64,000 nt of DNA from Prasinococcaceae sp. CCMP 1430 (lineage: Eukaryota; Plantae; Prasinodermophyta), in contig RQSC01000031.1 of assembly GCA_013416795.1 (NCBI GenBank), positions 1 through 64,000 of the forward strand. The letters are read 5' to 3'. Positions 3,846 to 63,410 of this stretch are shown piece after piece. Made by a program: the position numbers and the translations under genes. Positions within the stretch are counted from its first letter, which is position 1. Each line of letters opens with the position of its first letter. The notes beneath the pieces are model-generated. The model was not told the origin of the DNA. It saw only the letters and a list, made by a program, of their open reading frames with translations, and did no database searches.

Positions 3846-4554
3846 NNNNNNNNNNNNNNNNNNNNNNNNNNNNNNNNNNNNNNNNNNNNNNNNNNNNNNN
3901 NNNTCCCCCCCCGCCGCACCCTCGGCGTCGTCGTCGCGCGCCGGCGCACCCGCGCGAGCGAACGCACCGCGCACAGGTTCGGGTTCAAATTAGGGTCTGT
4001 ACCACACATCACGCCGAACGCCGCCCCCGCCCGCGGGGCGCGCGTACCCCAAACGCGATCCCGCGCTCGAACGCCCGCGCTGCCGGCGCGTTCCCCCCCC
4101 CTCGGAAAACACGTTTTTTTTTTTTTTGGTGTGCGTCGCCCCGAAGCGCGGCCACCCATCAAAACGCATCTAAAAATAAAACAATTTCATGCGGGGAAAT
4201 GAAAATGCTTTGACTGGCAGGCTGCCGCGGCGTTCGAGGGGGGGCGCGCGCGCGCGGCCATCGAAACGCACCGCGCGTCCGGGCGCCCGCGCCGTGACAC
4301 GCGCACACACGGTCATCGAGGCCACGGGAGACTACTCCATGCCCGCGCATGCATGTCGGCCATTTCCTATCAAAATCAATGCGAACCGCCGTCGCCGACG
4401 GTTTGGGTGTAGTCTTTGGGGTTAGGTTTTTGGATGTAGGGTTTGAAGAGCGTTACGGAGCTACCGGCGGAGGGCGCGGCGTGCGGCGCCGGCGGCGGCG
4501 CTGACGGCGAGGCACGCGAGGGCGGACTCTGCGCTGTACTGCTGGAGGTATAAC

Positions 4555-5710
4555 ATGTACGGCGAAGGGGTCGTGCCGAGCGGCGTGGGCGCGTGGTCCT
4601 CCGTGAGCCCATCTCTGTTCCACTCGTGCGGCATCGCGCAGGCCGACGGCGCGCTGCACTGCTGGGGATCGAACACCGACGGGCAGACGGACGTGCCGAG
4701 CGGCGTGGGCGCGTGGTCGTCCGTGAGCACCGGAATGTACCACACCTGCGGCATCGCGCAGGCTGACGGCGCGATGCGCTGCTGGGGATCCCCCTCTGAC
4801 TACGACGACTACGGCCAGGCGGACGTGCCGAGTGACGTGAGCGCGTGGTCGTCCGTGAGCGCCGGAATGTACCACACGTGCGGCATCGCGCTGGACGACG
4901 GCGCGCTGCACTGCTGGGGATCTAACGGCGAGGGCCAGACGGACGTGCCGGTCGTTGTGAGTGCGTGGTCCTCGGTAAGCACCAGGGAATGGCACACGTG
5001 CGGCATCGCGCAGGCCGACGGCGCGCTGCTCTGCTGGGGACTCAATGGCAACGGCCAGACGGACGTGCCGAGCAACGTGAGCGCGTGGTCCTCCGTGAGC
5101 GTCGGGTCGTACTTCACGTGCGGCGTCTCCCGGGACGACGGCGCGATTTACTGCTGGGGCGACGGAGAATACGGCCAGACGGACGTGCCGAGCTGGCTGC
5201 CGCCGAGCCCGCCGACGAGTCCTCCGCCGGCGGCCAGCCCGCCGTCGAGCCCGCCGCCGTCGAGCCCGCCTCCGTCGAGCCCGCCGCCGTCGAGCCCGCC
5301 TCCGTCGAGCCCGCCTCCGTCGAGCCCGCCTCTTCAAAACCCGCCGCCCAACAACCCGAACTCTCCGCCGCCCCTCGTTGTGGATGCCACACCGCACTCC
5401 GTGAGCGCCGGGCGCTCGCACACTTGCGGCCTCGCGCACGCCGACGGCGAGCTGCGCTGCTGGGGCCACGACGGCTACGTTCACGTGCCGCACGATGCGG
5501 GGCGCGACAACACCTGGTCCTCCGTGAGCGCCGGACTCTCCCACACGTGCGGCGTCGCGCGGGCCGACGGCGCGCTCCAGTGCTGGGGGTCCAACTACGC
5601 GGGCCAGGCGGACGTGCCGAGCGCCGTCCGCGCGTGGTCCTCCGTGAGCGCCGGAGGGGCCCACACGTGCGGCGTCGCGCGGGCCGACGGCGCGCTCCAC
5701 TGCTGGGGGT
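4555..5710 (+). CDS. RCC1/BLIP-II-like beta-propeller repeat protein with a Ser/Pro-rich linker (partial, runs into N-gap)
   Basis: About 8 roughly 40-aa repeats WSSVS.G..HTCG.A.ADGAL.CWG.N..GQ.DVP, split by an (SPPPS)n linker. Confidence 0.8.
5198..5331 (+). repeat. 15-nt coding tandem repeat encoding (SPPPS)n
   Basis: Repeated CCGTCGAGCCCGCC(G/T); protein SSPPPSSPPPSSPPP. Confidence 0.9.
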
Positions 5711-50748: not shown

Positions 50749-53230
50749 ATGCTCGCGGGCGGGGCGAAAGGGGCACGCGCCGCGCCGACGGCGGCGGCGG
50801 CCGCGGGCGCCGAGGCAAGCGTCGCTGAGGCGGATGCGGCGGATGGTGCTGCAGCCGGAGGGGATGGTGAGAGCGGGCCATCAGCCCCCGATGCACCCGC
50901 GAGCGACGCGCTGGCACCTGAAGTTGCCCGCCGTTGCAACTATGCCATCATCGCGCACCCAGACGCCGGCAAGACGACGCTCACGGAGAAAATGCTCCTG
51001 TACGGCGGCGCGCTGCGCGAGGCAGGCGAGATCAAGGGCAAAGGAGCGGACAAGGCGACCAAGTCCGACTGGATGGACATCGAGCAGCAACGAGGCATCT
51101 CAGTAACGGCAAGCGCGCTCATGTTTGAGGTGCGAGTGTGCGCGCGCAGAGCACGAGCGAGCCGCGCGAGCCGCGCGAGCTGCGCGAGCTGCGCGAGCCG
51201 CGCGGGCTGCGCGAGCGGCGCAAGCGTGTGCGTTGGCTGACCCGAGGGGCTGCGCACTGTCGGGCTGTCGCTCGTGTGCTCGCCCTTCCGTCGTCCGCAG
51301 GCCCGCGGGCGCCAGGTGACGCTGCTGGACACGCCCGGCCACAAGGACTTCAGTGAGGACACGTATCGCTCGTTGGCTGCTGCGGACAACGCGCTCATGC
51401 TCGTGGATGCCGGCAAAGGCCTTGAGCCACAGGTGCGCTCATGGGCGCCCTTGCGCCCCGCGGACGCGCGCGTGTTCCGTGGCGCCCCGTCGTGCACCTA
51501 CGTTCGCGTGCTCGCGCACCCGAGCTGACTCCTGCCGCCTCCCCGCCTGCAGACGCACAAACTCTTCGAGGTGTGTCGCCTTCGCCACCTGCCCATCTTC
51601 ACATTCATGAACAAGCTCGATAGGCCTGCGCTCGAGCCTCTTGAGCTCCTCGAGGAGATTGAGAACGAGTTTGGCATGGCCACGTTCCCCGTGGTGTGGC
51701 CCCTGGGCTCGGGCGACCGGTTCGCTGGCGTCATCGACCGGTTGGAGCGGAGCGTGCATCTTTACACCAAAAGTGGACGCGATGGCAAGTCCAAGGGCGC
51801 CATCACCGAGGTGCTGAGCCTGGACGACGACATGGACCGCATCGAGGAGCTCGTTGATAGCGAGGTGCTCTCGGTAGCGCTGGAGGAGGTTGAGCTGCTC
51901 GATGACGCTGGCGCCGAGCTCGACATGGAGGCTGTGATCGCCGGTGACATGACGCCGGTGTTCTTCGGCGCGGCTATCAACAACTTCGGGATCGAGCTGC
52001 TCCTGGACTACTTCCTCAAGTTTGCGCCGTGCCCGGGCGCCAAGGACACGTCCGCCGGCGTGAGCGTGCAACCAACGCAGGAAGCCTTCACTGGCTTTGT
52101 TTTCAAGCTTCAGGCCAACATGGACAAGCGCCACCGTGACAAGCTGGCCTTCTGCCGCGTGGTCAGCGGCAAATTCGAAAAGGGGATGAAGGCGACCGTA
52201 GCGCGCACTGGCAGGACTTTGTCGATGAGCGCGCCGCAGAAGCTCTTCGCGGAGGATCGCGATACCGTCGAAGTCGCCTATGCAGGAGATGTCATCGGTC
52301 TGAACAATCCCGATGCGTTCGCCATCGGAGACACGCTGTATGCTGCGGGCACGCCCAAGGTACGGCGACACTGCATGATGCCGTCAGCATGCGCGCCCCG
52401 ACGCGCACTCGCACGCCCGAGCCCGCGATCATGCCCGAGCGCGCTCTGACACACGGGCCACCTCCACACGCGCTGCGCGCGCGAATAGGTCTCGTTCCCC
52501 CCGATCCCAGCATTTTCCCCCGAGCTTTTCGCCTACCTACGACTGGAGGACCCCGGCGCGCGCAAGGCCTTCACCAAAGGCGTCGACCAGCTGCTCTCTG
52601 AGGGCGCGGTGCAGGTGCTCAGCGGGCGCAACGAGCTGAGCACGCAGGCGCCCATCCTGGCGGCAGTGGGCGAGCTGCAGTTTGACGTGGTGCTCGACAG
52701 ACTCATGTCCGAATACAAGGTCCGTGGAGTTACTCAGTGCGCGCGTCGCGCGCTTGGCGCTTGTTGCGTGGCGCGAATGGTGGGCTGACCCAGACCCCGC
52801 CCCCGAATCTCCCCGCTTCCCGGTGCGTGCAGGTGGCTGCTCGGCTGGACCGCATGCCGTACACTGTCGCGCGCTGGGTCAAGGAGGGCGGCTGGGAGGC
52901 CGTCGACGCCGCCGGCGACCTCTTCGGGGTGGAGACAGTGCAGGATGTGTACGGGCGCCCTGTGTTGCTCTTCAAGGTCCGTGGCCATTCGCTCTCACTG
53001 CCGTGCCAGTGTCCTCAGCGCGTGCGTCCGCAACACTCGCGCTGACTCTCTCGCGCGCCGACGCTCGCACACGCTCGCGTCACGGGATGCGCGCGTGTCC
53101 TCAGAACGTGTGGGCGGTGAACAGGCTCATGGACGACGCGCCTGAGCTCTACGAGCGCTTGCTTCCGTACTCATTCGCCCCCACAGACGAGGAGCAGGCC
53201 GCGCTGGCGAAAGCACAGAAGAAGCGGTAG
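50749..53230 (+). CDS. prfC: Organellar peptide chain release factor 3, 6 exons (50749-51129, 51301-51432, 51553-52359, 52489-52719, 52833-52976, 53105-53230)
   Basis: [75 protein letters not shown]. Confidence 0.95.
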
Positions 53231-53377
53231 CGCAGCACAGCCGGCAATGCCAGCGATGGTAATGGGTGATTGTCTGTGACAGCAGCCAGGAAATACGCAC
53301 GCCTTTAGAGCGCGCTCAACCGTGGCACCTATGAAGGAGCGAGCGAGCGAGCGCGCGCGCGCGCGAGCGGGCTAGGC

Positions 53378-54355
53378 TCAGCGCTTCCCCCCGACGTTGA
53401 TCTTGGACTGGAGGTAGCCAAGGAGGGCGAACGGGCAAACCTCCTCGCACTGCTCGGCCGTGATCGCAACGCGCTTCCCGCTTTTCTTGAGCGTCGCAGT
53501 GAAGAGCAACGCGCCCTTGCTTGTTGTCTGTCCGTCATACTCGATCCGTTCGATGTGCTCCTTCTCAGCCTTCTTGGCCATCTTCAGCGTCAAGTCCAGG
53601 ATCTTCTTGCACTCGTCAAGGTCGCTGTGCCAGCTAGGCAGTTCCGTGGGAACCACCGGCGAGGGCGTGCGGCGGGGCTTCTTCTTGGTCGCGCCCTTTG
53701 CGGGAGGAGCGTCGGCGGCGCCGCGTTTGCGCTCCTTCTGTGCGCCGTTGCCCGCGCCCTTCGGTGGGCGGCTGCCAGAGCGGCTTGCCTGCTTGAGCGA
53801 TGCCTCATAGGCTGCCACCAGATCGTCGCAGTCGAGGTTCGCCCGAGGTTCCCAGGTGTCCCACTCCGGTCCGTAGCCGACCCATTTTACCTTATAGTAG
53901 CAAACCCTCTTGGTCTTGTTGCCTCGGCGCGCCTTCTCGTCCACGTACCTCTTGTCGAGGATCTTCTCCACCTCGTACTCGCCTTCGACGACCTCACCGG
54001 TGTCCACCTCCGTCGCGAAGCCAGGCGCGCCCTCCTTGACAACGCCCGGCGCTTTCTCTCCGTCGAGCGTAGTCGCTAGCACGACTTTTTTGGCCTTCTT
54101 CGGGGACGACGCCTCACCGTCCTCCTCGCTGGCCTCCTTCTCGCCGCTGCCTCCGTCTCCCGTCGCTGCCCCCTGCTTGTCCCCGCCTTCGCCGCCGTCG
54201 GTCTCGGTGGCAGTGCCGCCGCTGCTGCCGCCCTTCACCCCGCCGGAGGTATGAAAGCTCTTCGAATCGCTCTTGGTCGGGGCATCGTCCGCCTGCCACA
54301 CCGCGTGGGGCTCATCAGCGTCCGCTGAGGGCGCGCCTGCCGCATCCTCAGCCAT
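53378..54355 (-). CDS. HP1/LHP1-like chromodomain protein with a probable chromo-shadow domain
   Basis: [28 protein letters not shown] (aromatic cage), basic hinge, C-terminal [29 protein letters not shown]. Confidence 0.8.
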
Positions 54356-55673
54356 GCCCTCGCCGCCAATCGCCGACTGGCGTCTGGCTGGCCGGCTTTT
54401 GGCGCCTGCGCCGCGCGTCCCGGTTGCACGCCTTTGCCGCGCCGGCAGCTGGCGCAGCGGCCGCGGCCTCTCCTGCGCCGGGTTGCGCAGGGGGAGGCCC
54501 TCGGGGGCACGCGCTCGCACGCGCCGAAGCCGTCTGCTTGCTCCCGCGCGCACTGTGGCGCCCCCCGACCGCGGCCGGTGCCCGCACTCGCGACGGGGCG
54601 CGTGCGCTCGCGAGATCTTTTCCGCCCCGCGCCGTTTCAGTTCCGGGGTCCCTGTGGCGCCCTGCGCGCGAAAAACGCGCGAGCGCGCCCTACGCGCACA
54701 CGCGCAGCCGACCGTGCCCGCGGGCACGGCCTCTCGAGTATGCCAGGAATGAATTCGCCAGAGGCATGCACGGCCATCGTGACATGGCCTCACCGGCTGG
54801 TGGGCAGTTGACTACGATGTGGGTTGCGCATGTCGCGGTACGCCTCTCTACGATAGACGGCCGCCGGCGACGATGTGCGTGCGCCGCGCGTCAACACAAG
54901 GCACGCGTCGACGGAGCGCCCGGCGGTGACCGCCGGCGCTCGAACAAACCGGGCGTAGGGGGCGAGCGTGCGCGGTTGCAACACGCAGACACTTGCTCAA
55001 GAGCGCGTGGGAGCATCACGCAACCGCAATTGGGGTACACGGTCATGTGTGTGGGCGTGGCGGTGCGTACGCCTTTGGGCCACGTCGTCCATGAGGCCAC
55101 GCTCGTGGAGGACACGGCCGCCCTCGCCGACGGCGCGGTCGGCGCCCCCCGCCGGCCGCGGCGGCGTCAACGGCGGGCGCGCGCGCGCGCGCCCCGCACC
55201 GCCGATTCGGATTCGCGGCGCGCAAACGCGAACCGTAAACTGCAGCTGGCACTCACCTCGCAACGCCTTGCGTTCGGAACCACCGGTGTCGACAACGACA
55301 ACGCAAATAGCCTCGCAGCCCGGCGAGCTGTTTCCCGCTCCAAGCCAGCCCCCACCCAGCGCCGGTGCCGCGCGCGAAAACGAAATGCCGCAGAGCCGCC
55401 GGGCGCGGGTCGGAGCAGAGACCCATCGGCGAACCCTCGTGTCTCAGCCCCAAAACAAATGTGAGAGGTGTTTGGGTTCACGCTGCAGCGCCGCCCGCGG
55501 GCGGCACCGGTTGCACGCGCGTCGAGTCGACCCGAACCATTTGCGGTAGGGTTTGCATCGATCGGATCGGAGGGGGGACGCTGCGCGGGGCGACGGGCGC
55601 CCCGCTGGCGGCGCCGACGCCGGCGTTGTGCGTGTCCCCGAGGGGAGGGGCGGAGGGCGCCACACGCGCGCAG

Positions 55674-57000
55674 GGTGACCGGCGCCGGTCCTCCGGGCGG
55701 CACGCCCGGGGCCGCGCGGCGGGTGCGATGCGTCGGCGTGAGCGGCCAGCAGCACGGCCTGGTGGCCGTGGACGGCGACGGTGTCCCTGTGCGGCCGTGC
55801 AAGCTGTGGTGCGACACAGAGTCACGCGCCGAAGCCGCCGAGCTCAGCGCCGCCTATGGTTGGGCCATGGCCGCGGGCTTCACCGCGTCCAAGGCGCTGT
55901 GGCTCAAACGCAACGAGGCACACAACTGGGAGCGCACGCGCACGGTGCTGCTGCCGCACAACTACGTCAACCTCTGGCTGTGCGGCGTGGCCTCCGCGGA
56001 GGCAGGGGACGCCTCGGGCGTCGGCGTCTTGGCCGAGGTCGACGGCGCCGCCGATGGCGGCGCGCGCTACGACGCGGCAAAGTGCGCGGCCGTGGACGAG
56101 CGCTTCCTCGCGATGCTGCCGCCGCTCGCCGGGCACGACGATCTGCTCGAAAGGGACGGCGCGCCCGCGTGCGTGCTACCCGAGGCGCTCGAGGCGCTGG
56201 GCCTCCCTTCGAACGCGCGCATCCGTGTGAGCGCCGGCAGCGGGGACAACATGTGCAGCGCGCTCGGTGCCGGGGCGTGCGTGCCCGGCCGCATGGTGCT
56301 GTCGCTGGGCACGAGCGGCACGCTCTTCGGATGCTCGGAGGCGGCCGTGAGCGACGCCACCGGCACCGTGGCGCCCTTCCGCGACGCAACGGGCCACCAT
56401 CTGCCGCTCCTCTGCCTGCAGAACTGCACATCTGCGCTCAATGAGGTGGCGCGGGGCTACGGCATGCCGCACGAAGAGCTCGCTCGGCTGGCCGCGGACG
56501 AGCCCCCAGGGTGCGGAGGGCTGACCTTCCTGCCGTACGTGAGTGGAGAAAGGACGCCAAACTGGCCACACGCCACTGGCGCGCTGCTCGGCGTGTCGCC
56601 CGGGCTGCTGCGCCCGGGGGCCGTCTACCGCGCGGCGCTCGAGGGGGTGACCTTTGCGCTGCTCGCAGGGTACGACCGCATGCGCGAGCTCGGCGTCGAC
56701 GCGAAGGAGCTCAGGCTCGTCGGCGGAGGCTCGAGCAACAAGCTGTGGAGACAGATCATCGCGGACGCCTTTCAGCTTCCTCTCCGATTTCCGGCAGAGC
56801 CCGAGAGCGCGGCTCTGGGCGCCGCGCTGCAGGCAGCCGCCGCCTTCGCCAGCGCCGGCGTGGGCTCGTACGTGCGCGACAAGGCCGACCCGCCGCTGCT
56901 GCCTGAGTTGGTGGAGCCCGACGCGGCGACCGCCGCGCACTACGCGGCGGCCTTCCAGCGGCACCAGGCGCTCGGCAAGAAGCTCTTCGATGGCGAATGA
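55674..57000 (+). CDS. xylB: Xylulokinase (FGGY family); N-terminal exon not found
   Basis: VGVSGQQHGLV, PCKLWCD, GFTASK.LWL, GDASG, GSGDNM, LSLGTSGT, LPYVSGERTP, RAALEG, VGGGS...LWRQIIAD. Confidence 0.85.
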
Positions 57001-58519: not shown

Positions 58520-59400
58520 CTGTGTGCACGGCCCAGGGTGTCGAACGCCAGCGTGTGGAACTGGATGCGGTGGTGCTCGCAGATCTTCGCGTAGCGCTGG
58601 ACGTGGACCTTGTAGAGGTGCTCCAGGCCTGCCGCCGTGGACGGGTTCGCGCCTGCCATGTTGACCTTGGCTGACGGATCCGTGAAGGTGACGTCGAGGC
58701 AGTGTCTGAGTGAAAGCTAGCTATCCGCCCGCAGCGCTGCCGCGTGAGCGGCGCCTGGGGCGGTCGTGTGTGACAAGGACAACGAGATGCATCGCACGTT
58801 CGCGCACCCCGTCTACAGAGACCGCTTCGGCTCCCCACAAGACCTGCTCATGCCTCGCACCACAGAGCGCGGCTACTGCATGGCCTGGTGTCGTCGCTTC
58901 GGGCTTCAGTCGACGCTCGTCTCTCCGGACGCCCCACACGCTCCCTCGTGCCACTCTGCAGCAGGCATCAACGGCGCCCACGCCACGGTCTGCTCGTCGG
59001 CAGCTGGGGAGCGCGCCTACCGCCACAACCGCCTCGTGCGCAACTTCGCGAAGGTCGCTCGCCGCACCGGCTACCACGTGCACACCAACGGCCCCAGCTC
59101 CACCAACTCGTTCGAGTACTCGTTCGGTACTGACGAAAATGGCCAGCCCACTGACCTGCGCTCGNGTTGGTGTCGGTGATGACTAGGTCCGAGCGCAGGT
59201 CAGTGGGCTGGCCATTTTCATCAGTACCGAACGAGTACTCGAACGAGTTGGTGGAGCTGGGGCCGTTGGTGTGCACGTGGTAGCCGGTGCGGCGAGCGAC
59301 CTTCGCGAAGTTGCGCACGAGGCGGTTGTGGCGGTAGGTGCGCTCCCCTGCTGTCGACAAGCAGACCGTGGCGTGGGCGCCGTTGATGCCTGCTGCAGAG
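58520..59400. mobile_element. Fragments of a non-LTR retrotransposon C-terminus (Zn-knuckle-like plus RLE; CRE/R2/NeSL-type)
   Basis: C..H.AH.TVC...RAYRHNRLVRNF...TDLRSDLVITD and HCLDVTFTDP...YK..Y.KIC...F.TLAFDTLG, on both strands. No RT domain present. Confidence 0.72.
58954..59400. repeat. 211-bp inverted repeat (58954-59164 / 59190-59400), with 5 mismatches seen and a spacer containing a single N
   Basis: Read directly: CTCTGCAGCAGG...ACCTGCGCTCG and its reverse complement. Confidence 0.92.
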
Positions 59401-60768
59401 ACTTCAATATGAGGGCCGCGCGAAAGGTACACAGACGCAGATCCCTGCTCAGCCAACGCAGCGCCCATCCGTGGCCAGTGGCGCGGCGACGCGGCGGCCA
59501 AACAAGCGCCGCCGCACGAGCACGAGTCCACCGTCCAAGCAACAGCAAGGGGCCGGCAGATCTAGGCGCGACGGCGCGAATGCAACCGACAGCGAAGATG
59601 AGGGCGCAAGCTGCAGCGAGATCCGCAAGCGAGCTGAGCTCCTCGCGGCAGCAAAGGGCGCAAAGGGTAAGAGAGCGCCGAGAGTACCTGGCGTGTCATG
59701 GCATTCGCCTGTGAAAAAATGGACTGTGTACGCTACTGCTCGTAGTAGTGTAGGGTGCGATTACAATACGAGAAGACGCAAGCGCAAGGTTGCGTAGCGC
59801 GCGTGTGTAAGATCTAGGTGCATGTGTGAGAGCGAGCTATCCACCCGTAGCGCGGCTGCGAGAGCTGCGCCTTGGGCGGTCGTGTGTGTGCACGCCGCAC
59901 GCGCGGAGCACGCATGCCGACGATGAACTGTGCAGGCCGTCGGCTCGTACTGCGCATGGCAAGATGACTCAGTTGCACCTCGGCTACTTTCAGACGAAGG
60001 CTGATGCCATCGAGCGGCGACTCCGATATGATGCCGCACGGAAAGGGAAGCAGAAGGAGACCCCTGCTCAGCGCAAGGGGTCTCCCGCAGAGGCAATGGG
60101 CGAGGCGACGCGACAGCGCAACAACAGTCAATTGACGACAACGCCGCCAGCGCCGCCAGCGCGAGATGTTGGCACCCCTGATCAGGGAGGACAAATTTTC
60201 CAGACTCAATCAGGCACGCGTGATCTCGATGCTTATATGGAGCGGGCGTCGAACTTAGCGGACTCGCTGCAGCGAAGCGCACGTGAGGCTGTTGTGTTGG
60301 GGCAAGAGATGCGCCGCCTGATTGAGGGGCTTCAGCAAGAAAACGATGCCCTGCGAAAGAAGCATCGGGACTTGGAGCAGACGCTGCGACTTTCACACGC
60401 GCGCAATGAGGAAGCTACCTACGTCAATGCGATCGATGATGGCGGATGCGCGCGCACACGCTCTTACGGGTGGCGCTACAGGCGCTTGCGTCTTCCCGCA
60501 CTGTAATCGCACCCTTAGCAGCAGCAGCAGGTGGTGCGCACGGAGACGCAGGTGAAGAGCTCGCATAAGAGGCCGTAGCTAGCCTGGCGAACGCAGCGCT
60601 GCCGTTTGTAGGCCGCCATGGCCGTATGTTGGTTCGCAGCATGATCTTCGTAAGCACACACGCTGCGGAGTGTTGCATCCACGCAGCGCGCTTTGTCGCT
60701 CCAAGCAAGCTTCGCACCCTCCCCACAAGTTGTCAGGACATGTTGCCCTGTGCTCAGGGCGAGTGCGC

Positions 60769-62655
60769 TCACGATCGGATGCCGCACTGGGCCTCTTCCT
60801 CCGCGCAGGAAGCCATCCAGGCAGCAAGGACCTTCTGCTGCTCGGTGAGCCCTCCAGCGAAGTAGTACTCTGCGTGTGTCGGGTCAGCGTCGACCTCCAT
60901 CTCGAGGAGCCACTCAAACTTGTCGTTGCCTTGGCCCATGACTCTGCAGTTTCCGAGGTAGGCGATGGTCGTAGGGCTCTCTCCTCGCCATGTGATCGGG
61001 CCGAAGCATCGAACGCTTGTCCTCTTCTCATGGGCGACACGCATGTAGAGAGAGTTCGGCGTGTGCCTGATGCGTTCAGCGAGGAACCAAAACCTGCGCG
61101 TGTGTGTGTGCGCTGCCGAGCGTGTGCGTGCACCAATGTGCCCACGGGTTACGTATGGTCCATACTCTGGCTTGACAAACGCTCTGCTGAAGAACAGATA
61201 GACTGCACCATCTCTGCCGTTGCCCTTGACCGCGCCGCTGAATGAATGTGGCTCGAGGCCGAGAAGCACCGTCGCCTTTGGGTGCACGAAGGTGTCACCA
61301 GGTAGCCACACATCCTCTGACTGCGAAGTGCCCGTGAGCTTGACTCCAAACTCCTCGTTTGCGCGCAGCAGCGCGCGAGCGTGCACGTCCTTGCGGACCC
61401 GCCCCCCGCAGACCACTCGCGAGTGGTGAATGCGCGACGCACTGGGGTGCGCTGGGTCGAAACGTATGCCCAACAGATCCAGACGAGGCTGCTCCGCCAA
61501 TCTCCGCACAGCGTCTGGGGCGCATCGCGTTCCCCTAAGTTCATGGAGCACGCGTATGATGACACTTATCGCGACCTGCCCTTCGATCAGCGTTGGACAT
61601 CGCCTCGAGTGCTGCACTTGGCGATCCGCACCTGGCATGAGCACGGTGCACCCTCCTTGCGCGACTTCAAACTCGATTCCGCCGCGGCGGCTGCGAAGAC
61701 GCTCGTTGAGACGCAGGCCCGCCTTGCCACCATTCTTGACATACGCGTGCACGATGGGGTATTCCAGCGACACTGAGTCGCCGTCGCTATGGAAATCAAT
61801 GCCTTCGTTCTTATGAGCGAGCGCATGGCCGCGGTACACGTTCAGTTGGACGCACAGCCTATCCTTGGCGGCACTCCAGTCCCACCTGCGCAGTGCGTCG
61901 GACCGAAGGGTCGCTTCGACCAACTTGCGCAGCTCTGGCAAGTCCTCCAGAAAGGCGCTCACCGCGAAGCCCCCCTTGAGGCAGTGCTTGCTTCCCTGCT
62001 CTGGCTGCGACCCATGAAAAAGCGTTTTGCCCGTGGCATACGCGCTCATGAAGTTGAGGCGGCCAAATGGCACGTAAATGCCGCCGACCATGTGGAACTG
62101 CTGCTGGAGGGGCAGCCTGCTCGCCTCGTACGCGCCCACGAGCGCCGCGCACAGGGCTCCGTCCAGTAAGTCAGGATAATGCGCTTCCACGAGCTCGCCA
62201 CTTTTTGCGATGCGAACCAGCCGAGTTCCAGAGTCCATTGCGACGGCGAAGGCCACATTCGCGCTGGCAACGTCGTCGTCGTCTGTGGACGTTTCTGCGA
62301 CGTCCACGTCCGTGAGCGTGTCGGCACTCGCAGACGCAAGCGGCGGCATGGGCGCCGACATCGCTCGCGTCTTCTTCTTGCGCACGAGATGGGCGTCCAT
62401 CTTTCTCGCGGCTGTTGCGCCTGCGTCGCCAGGGCCTGCGAGCGGCCACCCTCTCCGACCGTCGATCGCACGCGCCGCCGCAGTCCTCACGGCGCCCACT
62501 GCTACCGAAAGGAACGAGAAAAAAGCTGCTTTGTTGAGACATGAGGCATACCAGCTGCAGGTGTCCAAGTCGCCGTGGCGCCCTTTTGAGCTCGCGCGTC
62601 GATCGTAGCGATCGCGGCCGTCGTCCAGCACACTCTGATCCCGCGCGCGCTTCAT
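60769..62655 (-). CDS. AlkB-type 2OG-Fe(II) dioxygenase with a probable C-terminal SRA/YDG-like domain
   Basis: QLNVY...FHSDGD...PIVH...VLMPGADRQVQH...AISVIIR, then GDTFVHP..VLLGLEPHSFSGAVKGNGRDGAVYLFFS...NSLYMRVAHEKRTSVRCF...AYLGNCRV. Confidence 0.62.
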   Translation of the reverse strand: MKRARDQSVLDDGRDRYDRRASSKGRHGDLDTCSWYASCLNKAAFFSFLSVAVGAVRTAAARAIDGRRGWPLAGPGDAGATAARKMDAHLVRKKKTRAMSAPMPPLASASADTLTDVDVAETSTDDDDVASANVAFAVAMDSGTRLVRIAKSGELVEAHYPDLLDGALCAALVGAYEASRLPLQQQFHMVGGIYVPFGRLNFMSAYATGKTLFHGSQPEQGSKHCLKGGFAVSAFLEDLPELRKLVEATLRSDALRRWDWSAAKDRLCVQLNVYRGHALAHKNEGIDFHSDGDSVSLEYPIVHAYVKNGGKAGLRLNERLRSRRGGIEFEVAQGGCTVLMPGADRQVQHSRRCPTLIEGQVAISVIIRVLHELRGTRCAPDAVRRLAEQPRLDLLGIRFDPAHPSASRIHHSRVVCGGRVRKDVHARALLRANEEFGVKLTGTSQSEDVWLPGDTFVHPKATVLLGLEPHSFSGAVKGNGRDGAVYLFFSRAFVKPEYGPYVTRGHIGARTRSAAHTHTRRFWFLAERIRHTPNSLYMRVAHEKRTSVRCFGPITWRGESPTTIAYLGNCRVMGQGNDKFEWLLEMEVDADPTHAEYYFAGGLTEQQKVLAAWMASCAEEEAQCGIRS

Positions 62656-63410
62656 CGGATGCGCCCTGTCCGGCCGCTACACCGAGCCCGTGGCGTCGGT
62701 CGACGGCACGGCGCGGCGCGCCGAGCACCGCGTCACTCTTGCTGCGCCAGCCGGCGGCGTCCCTCCCTACGCCCTCCCAATATCTGCTCGGCAGGTTGCG
62801 CGCGCGTGCGTCACTGGCACGCCCGCATCTATCTGCAGGGGCGGCAGCGCGCCGATTGCCTCTCAGTCGCGCGCCCCCTCCGTCGCCGCGCACGCCGCCG
62901 CTCCGCTTCTCCGCGCAGCACCGCCGGCGCGCCGCGCGGCCACTGGCGATACGTACTTCTTCGATGCTTCGATTGCCTCCCGGAAGTCGCGCTCGCGCCG
63001 CCGCGCCGCCGCGCCGCCCGGCTCCTAGGAAGTGATTAGTTAGGGGTCAATTGCCCTCACCGTCGAGAGCGCCATTAAGGGTCAAATCTTACATTAGGGT
63101 TTAAAATCGAATTGTACCGTTCGATGCCTCCTTTGCGTTTGACCACCCCCGGCGGTCGGGGGCGCGTTCCCCCGGCGATGTTGTTGACCGGCGGCGTTCG
63201 AATGCGAGGGGGCGCCCACTGCGGCGGGGGCCCGGGCGCAGGGGGCGCGCGGCACGGGAAGAGGGAGGGCGCGGGGGGTGAGCGGCGCCACACTGGCGCG
63301 CTCGTGTGTGTGTGTTGGCGCGGCGGCGGCATGCGGCGCCGCCCGCCGCCACAAACGCCTCGACCGGCCCGCGGGCGCGCGCCCGCGCGCCGGCGGCGAC
63401 GCCGACCGGG

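Follow-up and report, generated by a model that had tools for sequence, protein, structure and literature searches.

The window analysed here is the whole stretch of 64,000 nt from positions 1 to 64,000 of contig RQSC01000031.1 (assembly GCA_013416795.1) of the alga Prasinococcaceae sp. CCMP 1430. On its minus strand, at 60769..62655 (stop codon included), it carries an open reading frame (ORF) of 628 aa, whose product we call P0001, and this ORF is a real, expressed gene, more than a chance ORF. The N-terminal part of the protein is, according to its structural model, a very divergent domain of the AlkB fold with the HxD...H triad intact, and the C-terminal part is a probable reader of modified bases. 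The two domains form a module that a small set of marine picoalgae have conserved, and two divergent environmental lineages have a C5 DNA methyltransferase beside this module or fused with it. We propose, with moderate confidence, that the protein is a nuclear AlkB-family demethylase tethered to methylated DNA, which most plausibly removes the 3-methylcytosine (3mC) made by DNA methyltransferases (DNMTs).

An architecture of AlkB plus SRA is already known as a prediction in fungi (PMC4738411). What is new is a very divergent algal family of this architecture that Pfam misses, the loss throughout the family of the first arginine for 2-oxoglutarate (2OG), and the conserved association with a C5 methyltransferase, either linked or fused.

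The gene and its transcript

The initial annotation, made from the sequence alone, had proposed the 628-aa ORF together with a series of motifs, and all of them were found at the expected residues: QLNVY at aa 270-274, FHSD at 288-291, QVQH at 346-349 and AISVIIR at 362-368, and in the tail PGDTF at 452-456, GAVKG at 474-478 and AYLGN at 565-569. Exact-sequence look-up assigns the protein to the marine green alga Prasinoderma coloniale. The 90% cluster of P0001 includes the UniRef entry A0A7R9Y1Z3, derived from an MMETSP transcript and automatically named 'Fe2OG dioxygenase domain-containing protein'.

Regarding transcription, on which the initial annotation had made its proposal depend, the gene is covered by contigs of the runs X1 and X2, which are labelled only as probable RNA, and by pieces from marine metatranscriptomes. 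The X1 contig (record 6) is colinear with 60461-62699, with 0 mismatches and 0 gaps, and both flanks have zero depth. The transcript as assembled (60461..62699, minus strand) is therefore 2239 nt long; its 5' leader has 44 nt and its 3' untranslated region 308 nt, the latter lacking the TGTAA poly(A) signal of green algae. The same span is covered in X2 by two pieces (records 11 and 14), and two seawater metatranscriptomes (X3 and X4) contain short, near-identical pieces of the gene.

Furthermore, the frame of 628 codons is intact, with no stop or frameshift, in 7/7 environmental contigs (ENA, Tara and Logan) of around 98% identity. The ratio of nonsynonymous to synonymous changes (pN/pS) against the window sequence was 0.24-0.54 for the whole ORF and 0.13-0.43 in the two domains, counted on few changes, and 0.66-2.0 in the first 132 codons, counted on very few. 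The gene is single-copy within the window. Its region has a G+C content of around 61-62% (62% in the ORF itself), which is at the low end of the 60-73% of the window, and its G+C at third codon positions (GC3) is 0.72, versus 0.86 in the neighbouring FGGY kinase gene and 0.79 in the chromodomain gene. This lower GC3, the loss of the canonical first arginine and the repeat-rich, rearranged 3' flank are what would be expected of a catalytically dead or decaying gene, that is, a pseudoenzyme or a relic near repeats. Nevertheless, decay is very improbable: the triad and the other motifs are kept across lineages of around 30% identity, the ORF is intact in all the environmental contigs with the low domain pN/pS given above, and the gene is transcribed both in culture and in the sea.

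The N-terminal 132 aa (62260..62655, minus strand) are of low complexity and had no homologue matches in the library and phmmer searches. They include a basic RKKKTR patch, a possible nuclear signal. The conserved sequence starts near residue 140. The MMETSP ORF (P0011) has another N-terminus, owing to one extra T in a T-run at around 62510-62525, and because the length of this run differs by one base, the start codon and the first 40 codons or so are doubtful.

The AlkB-type domain

The dioxygenase domain spans aa 133-385 (61501..62259, minus strand). With an alignment of 25 sequences, AlphaFold modelled residues 133-377 with a confidence (pLDDT) mostly of 70-95, whereas the single-sequence model of the whole ORF had a pLDDT of 34. 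As the initial annotation had anticipated, the domain models as a double-stranded beta-helix (DSBH) with an HxD...H triad, and its assignment to the AlkB type agrees both with the fold searches and with the pairing of motifs. In the Foldseek search against PDB the top 50 matches were all ALKBH2, ALKBH3, AlkB or FTO (E around 1e-9; template modelling (TM) score by target 0.67-0.72). Among the Swiss-Prot models, plant ALKBH2 came first (E 7e-11), and a 2OG-FeII_Oxy_2 cluster of the ESM Atlas matched with a TM score of 0.81 and a root mean square deviation (rmsd) of 2.9 over 206 residues. The fold-match values were 17.9 for ALKBH3, 17.0 for ALKBH2, 16.6 for FTO and 15.3 for Escherichia coli AlkB, and ALKBH5 and ALKBH1 were, like FTO, good matches too. 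Outside the AlkB family the best other 2OG oxygenase reached 12.2 and NgTET1 11.6, and thus the DSBH core with an AlkB-type N-terminal extension scores above other 2OG oxygenases. On the evidence of the model, the closest structural relatives are ALKBH3 and ALKBH2, the repair demethylases of 1-methyladenine and 3mC. Membership of the TET/JBP group was rejected, since the best fold match is not of that type.

The likeness to ALKBH3, ALKBH2 and E. coli AlkB is one of fold, with 204/211 ALKBH3 residues aligned at an rmsd of 2.9, and of motifs, with NxY, HxD, the distal His and the terminal Arg at equivalent places. In sequence, however, the algal family is only 11-16% identical to these enzymes and the query has no Pfam match; the best relative for 2OG-FeII_Oxy_2, P0006, reached a sub-threshold 15.1 bits, the cut-off being 31.2. 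The algal family also adds a conserved C-terminal domain of around 240 aa and has invariant residues of its own, H303 and R351.

The motifs were paired by hhalign against the single E. coli AlkB sequence (QLNVY with LINRY, FHSD with LHQD and QVQH with LFYH), at a probability of only 4.5%. QLNVY (61834..61848, minus strand, as are the following motifs) is the NxY motif, with N272 and Y274 corresponding to N120 and Y122 of AlkB, and its Q270 and Y274 do not vary in the family. FHSD (61783..61794) supplies the iron ligands H289 and D291 (H131 and D133 of AlkB), both also invariant. QVQH (61609..61620) supplies the distal ligand H349 (H187 of AlkB) and is followed by the invariant R351. Nearly all the full-length members keep N272 and H349; two have His or Gln in place of N272, and the truncated P0009 is the only one to lack H349.

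AISVIIR (61552..61572) is the last strand of the barrel. Setting strand 361-370 of the model against the C-terminal RYNLTFR of AlkB places A362 at R204 and R368 at R210, an equivalence that rests on this alignment. The replacement of the first arginine of the 2OG-binding motif by Ala, pointed out in the initial annotation, thus holds against both the E. coli AlkB sequence and the last strand of the model. Actually, the first Arg position of RxNxTxR is Ala, Ser or Gly in every member of the family, while the second Arg (R368) is kept. Both arginines hold 2OG in known AlkB structures. The family-wide replacement of the first one therefore suggests a non-canonical co-substrate site, and the invariant R351, two residues past the distal His, is a candidate substitute for the lost arginine.

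Because this arginine is lost, a co-substrate other than 2OG has been considered, perhaps in an enzyme that oxidises 5-methylcytosine (5mC) directly, as TET enzymes do, or modifies it in some other way. Weak oxidation of 5mC in vitro is a property of AlkB-family enzymes, and CMD1, a TET homologue in algae, works with ascorbate. The linkage to DNMTs and an SRA-like reader would both point to 5mC as well, as the absence of Arg at the A362 position throughout the family does to an altered site. We consider direct action on 5mC quite unlikely.

The C-terminal domain

The conserved C-terminal domain (aa 392-628; 60772..61482, minus strand) is, on the family's sequences, probably a divergent modified-base reader of the SRA/DUF3427 type, in the PUA superfamily. 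Across the family it shares the elements P-G-D-x-F, L-G-x-E, G-A-V-K-G, a VR strand and a Y-L-G-D/N strand. The SRA-like tail of the initial annotation is plausible from the order of the elements, a sub-threshold SAD_SRA match and the language-model neighbours, but it has lost the YDG motif and those of the pocket.

The Pfam SAD_SRA profile matched in the P0047/P0010 cluster only, with E-values of 0.0076-0.012 over profile positions 10-63; the match of P0010 had 15.8 bits, below the cut-off of 30.7. It covers PGDTF...GAVRG...GACYMWLS, which is the block that had been aligned beforehand in the initial annotation. Since both the family and the motif block had been named in advance, a chance match to that family is very unlikely. 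In the language-model comparison, the neighbours of P0010 (score 0.95, with 204/256 shared features) were the DUF3427, SRA (PF18491), ScoMcrA-SRA and AspBHI_N clusters. Residues 392-628 of P0001 had a score of only 0.80, and every listed set belonged to the SRA group.

The tail alignment (A3) had a sole match in PDB, at E 0.5, to the N-terminal domain of Lon, a domain with a PUA-like fold. The tail of P0047 had no match in PDB, the tail had none in NCBIfam and PADLOC, and tblastn against plasmids gave chance matches only. DUF3427 is the domain that senses modified cytosine in SauUSI-type enzymes (PMC6765204, PMC3141236).

The family

An exhaustive phmmer search of 1.84 billion representatives showed that the family consists of nine clusters at 50% identity, all from marine picoalgae. 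The named sources are Pycnococcus provasolii and Pseudoscourfieldia marina, and the others are marine metagenomes. The conserved unit is the two-domain module (aa 133-385 and 392-628 of the query), to which some members add other domains: a PTM/DIR17-type Tudor and Sel1 in P0002, a Ulp1 peptidase and Tudor in P0003, and DEK_C in P0006. The Pycnococcus gene is intronless and lies among ordinary housekeeping genes.

Word-indexed homologue searches were swamped by common words and returned only the query or the input sequence, and the scan of a metagenome collection with alignment A6 gave pattern matches and no relatives. The scan of viral contigs found no relatives either; it sees close relatives only and is therefore weak evidence against an origin in giant viruses.

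Linkage to a C5 DNA methyltransferase

Four environmental contigs carry a C5 methyltransferase and the AlkB/SRA-like module on the same strand, the methyltransferase lying directly upstream (L008:6253-10175, L013:4744-8764, L009:1-2855 and L012:5675-9529). In L008, the ORF directly upstream of P0006 matches PF00145 above the cut-off (E 1.2e-9), has the PC and ENV motifs and gives weak matches to M.HhaI in PDB. Its Tudor-like C-terminal part recurs as the N-terminus of P0039, a longer variant. The lineage of L012 (P0005/P0036 type) has only around 30% protein identity to the lineage of L008 and L013; its methyltransferase matches PF00145 with an E-value of 0.0019, is 34% identical to the L008 enzyme (E 5e-51) and also has PC and ENV. 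Both lineages have the same gene order, namely two conserved unknown ORFs, the methyltransferase and the AlkB module.

The break between the methyltransferase ORF and the AlkB ORF varies. It is a frameshift in L008 and L013, and a single in-frame stop in L009 and L012, where the methyltransferase and AlkB parts lie in one frame with only that stop between them. Methyltransferase and AlkB module are possibly fused in these lineages.

Downstream of the pair, L008:12181-16413 contains a gene with Chromo and a weak Ulp1 peptidase match, and a 950-aa DUF7869 gene; DUF7869 had no mention in the literature searched. The L008 contig may be a large DNA transposon that carries its own methylation genes.

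In P. coloniale, 14% 5mC (25% at CG) and five PF00145 DNMT genes have been reported, 5mC and 5mCG being the predominant marks (PMC11884799). A by-product of DNMT activity is 3mC, and the occurrence of DNMTs among eukaryotes follows that of ALKB2 (PMC9246332, a review of primary work). One possibility, which we hold only tentatively, is that AlkB domain and reader form a dedicated partner of C5 DNMTs, either a 5mC-targeted eraser of 3mC or a modifier of 5mC with a non-canonical co-substrate site. Such a module would travel with DNMT genes, including on the apparent transposon, and would be free-standing in Prasinoderma and Pycnococcus. If so, there would be a physical coupling of writer and repair, which so far has been inferred only from the co-evolution of DNMT and ALKB2, and it might be relevant to the reported absence of hypermutation linked to 5mC in P. 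coloniale.

The linkage also bears on N6-methyladenine (6mA). A divergent SRA-like tail could read 6mA in DNA or RNA instead of 5mC, and the enzyme would then be a 6mA demethylase, as has been predicted for divergent SRA domains fused to enzymes of the AlkBH3 clade (Iyer, Zhang, Aravind; PMC4738411). The tail without the classical 5mC pocket motifs and the good fold matches to FTO, ALKBH5 and ALKBH1 agree with that. However, the methyltransferase found in conserved linkage is of the C5 cytosine type and not of the adenine type, the cytosine marks predominate in P. coloniale, and the best fold matches are ALKBH3 and ALKBH2. A 6mA demethylase is therefore unlikely.

Proposed function

An ALKBH2/3-like enzyme occurs here with chromatin readers, with a probable base reader and, in two lineages, with a DNMT, and the simplest reading is a repair demethylase delivered to methylated DNA. 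The SRA-like tail would dock the enzyme on cytosine-methylated DNA, and there the AlkB domain would oxidatively remove N-methyl lesions, above all 3mC, the source of which would be the side reaction of the C5 DNA methyltransferases. The proposal of the initial annotation, an enzyme that reads a modified cytosine and oxidises a base, is in this way supported indirectly, by the C5 DNMT linkage in the relatives and by the published 5mC (PMC11884799). As for the substrate itself, we only infer that it is DNA rather than RNA and that 3mC is the target lesion.

Several points weigh against the repair demethylase. The query has no sequence match in Pfam, NCBIfam, PADLOC or PDB, and the absence throughout the family of the Arg matching R204 of AlkB could change or abolish the binding of 2OG. 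The pN/pS values are based on few substitutions. No methyltransferase adjoins the Prasinoderma gene or the Pycnococcus gene. Regarding the tail, it has no significant profile match to any SRA-type family (Pfam, NCBIfam, PADLOC and PDB). Its AlphaFold2 model has a pLDDT of 25-65, too low for a fold match, and the fold searches matched the N-terminal domain only. Where SRA has YDG, the family has (A/V/I)-Y/F-(L/I/V)-(G/A)-(D/N), of the YLGD/N type, and the GGY-DD stretch of the pocket is absent in P0001 and only hinted at in P0047 (SPGY...DDG).

The missing profile match and the missing confident fold would be natural if the tail were an unrelated, lineage-specific domain, and the enzyme an AlkB-like demethylase of general scope, for repair or for RNA, or else a hydroxylase of proteins. 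The language-model score of 0.80 is, in addition, at chance level for the first match, and the recognition value of P0010 lies below the comfort line. We regard an unrelated tail as rather unlikely all the same, because the SAD_SRA match is to a family named beforehand and covers the motif block that had been predicted, because the neighbours of two different members belong to the SRA group only, and because the order of the conserved elements agrees with an SRA domain.

If the delivered repair demethylase is right, an ALKBH2/3-like enzyme wired to a reader of modified bases would turn the correlation of DNMT and ALKB2 into a testable mechanism, and the point is stronger since the methyltransferase is itself part of the wiring in some lineages. 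The phylum of P. coloniale is the earliest-branching one among green plants, and the alga has abundant 5mC and an unusual mutation spectrum; therefore, a lineage-specific enzyme that handles methylation is of direct interest there. That the 2OG-anchoring Arg is missing throughout the family, although the rest of the active site is intact, is odd from an enzymological point of view. Moreover, Pfam does not see the family, of which the representatives searched contain only nine clusters, and therefore it marks a gap in the annotation of DNA-modification enzymes.

Comparison with known fusions and sensors

The prediction for the fungal AlkB (AlkBH3 clade)-SAD/SRA fusions is that they bring a demethylase of nucleic acids to modified bases (PMC4738411). 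Compared by description only, they share with the algal family an AlkB-type dioxygenase joined to a divergent SRA-like domain, but they belong to another kingdom, and the links to C5 methyltransferases, Tudor and DEK_C are those of the algal family. As no sequence link was found between the two, the algal fusion may be independent of the fungal one.

The tail shows the same order of G-D-x-F, GxxxG turn, hydrophobic strand, VR and Y-x-G-D as the sensors of UHRF1 (SRA), SauUSI, MspJI/AspBHI, ScoMcrA and TagI. Like the type IV restriction enzymes with SRA or DUF3427 (PMC6765204), the algal protein would be a sensor fused to an enzyme domain. It differs from these sensors in having no significant profile match, YLGD/N for YDG and unrecognisable pocket residues, and its partner is a dioxygenase whereas theirs is a nuclease. 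PUA-type domains fused to oxoglutarate dioxygenases have been mentioned in passing for bacteria (PMC6765204). With TET/JBP, including CMD1 of Chlamydomonas, the proposed enzyme would have in common that they are Fe(II) dioxygenases acting on DNA bases in organisms with 5mC, some of them carried by transposons.

The 72-nt stretch within the tail

The initial annotation had proposed an in-frame intron of 72 nt inside the tail. A GT (at 61165) and an AG (at 61094) do bound 72 nt in frame, but the stretch is unspliced in every RNA contig: X1, X2 and the metatranscriptome contig X3 (61073-61222) continue through it with no joint. The MMETSP ORF P0011 likewise retains the 24 residues that it encodes. 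The intron was therefore rejected, although a rare spliced isoform may still be compatible with the contig data.

The stretch (61094..61165, minus strand; around aa 497-521) contains a (CA)n run, and the protein is here around 16 aa longer than its closest relative, P0047. In the model, its pLDDT is below 50, around 23-37 in the core, mostly without regular structure. We read it as a retained, microsatellite-derived insertion that forms a disordered loop.

Surroundings of the gene

The locus had been described as repeat-rich, which is true of the 3' flank only and not of the gene. Over the gene and some 300 bp 5' of it, 7/7 environmental contigs are colinear, and in L006, the one contig that reaches that far, the FGGY kinase gene is still downstream, so that there the two genes have retained their relative positions. 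A mobile island that includes the AlkB-like gene was therefore rejected for the gene itself. The AP2/repeat stretch between the kinase and the AlkB-like gene (57.5-60.7 kb) is, on the other hand, rearranged between strains.

In 51571-57000, Pfam identified first a fragment of an EF-G/RF3-like GTPase, then a chromodomain protein (53378-54793, minus strand) and the FGGY sugar kinase (55468-57000), the latter being syntenic with the AlkB-like gene in L006.

Several transcript contigs, otherwise unrelated, contain a dispersed repeat of around 200 nt (59745-59944), which environmental strains have in inverted orientation directly after 60712, just 3' of the AlkB-like gene. On the other side, most of the environmental contigs bearing the gene begin within 50 bp of 62950 (62900-62950) and are only around 2.3 kb long. 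Metagenome assemblies thus break on both sides of the gene, and on the 3' side they do so at the repeat.

At 58954-59400 there is a near-perfect inverted repeat containing an N, with 211-nt arms that are 98% complementary and a 25-nt spacer; it may be an element that forms a hairpin, or it may have arisen in the assembly. Finally, far from the gene, 4438-5709 is a tandem array of 120-nt units with a repeated motif ending in CWG which, in our impression from the translated repeats, presumably resembles an RCC1-type repeat protein.

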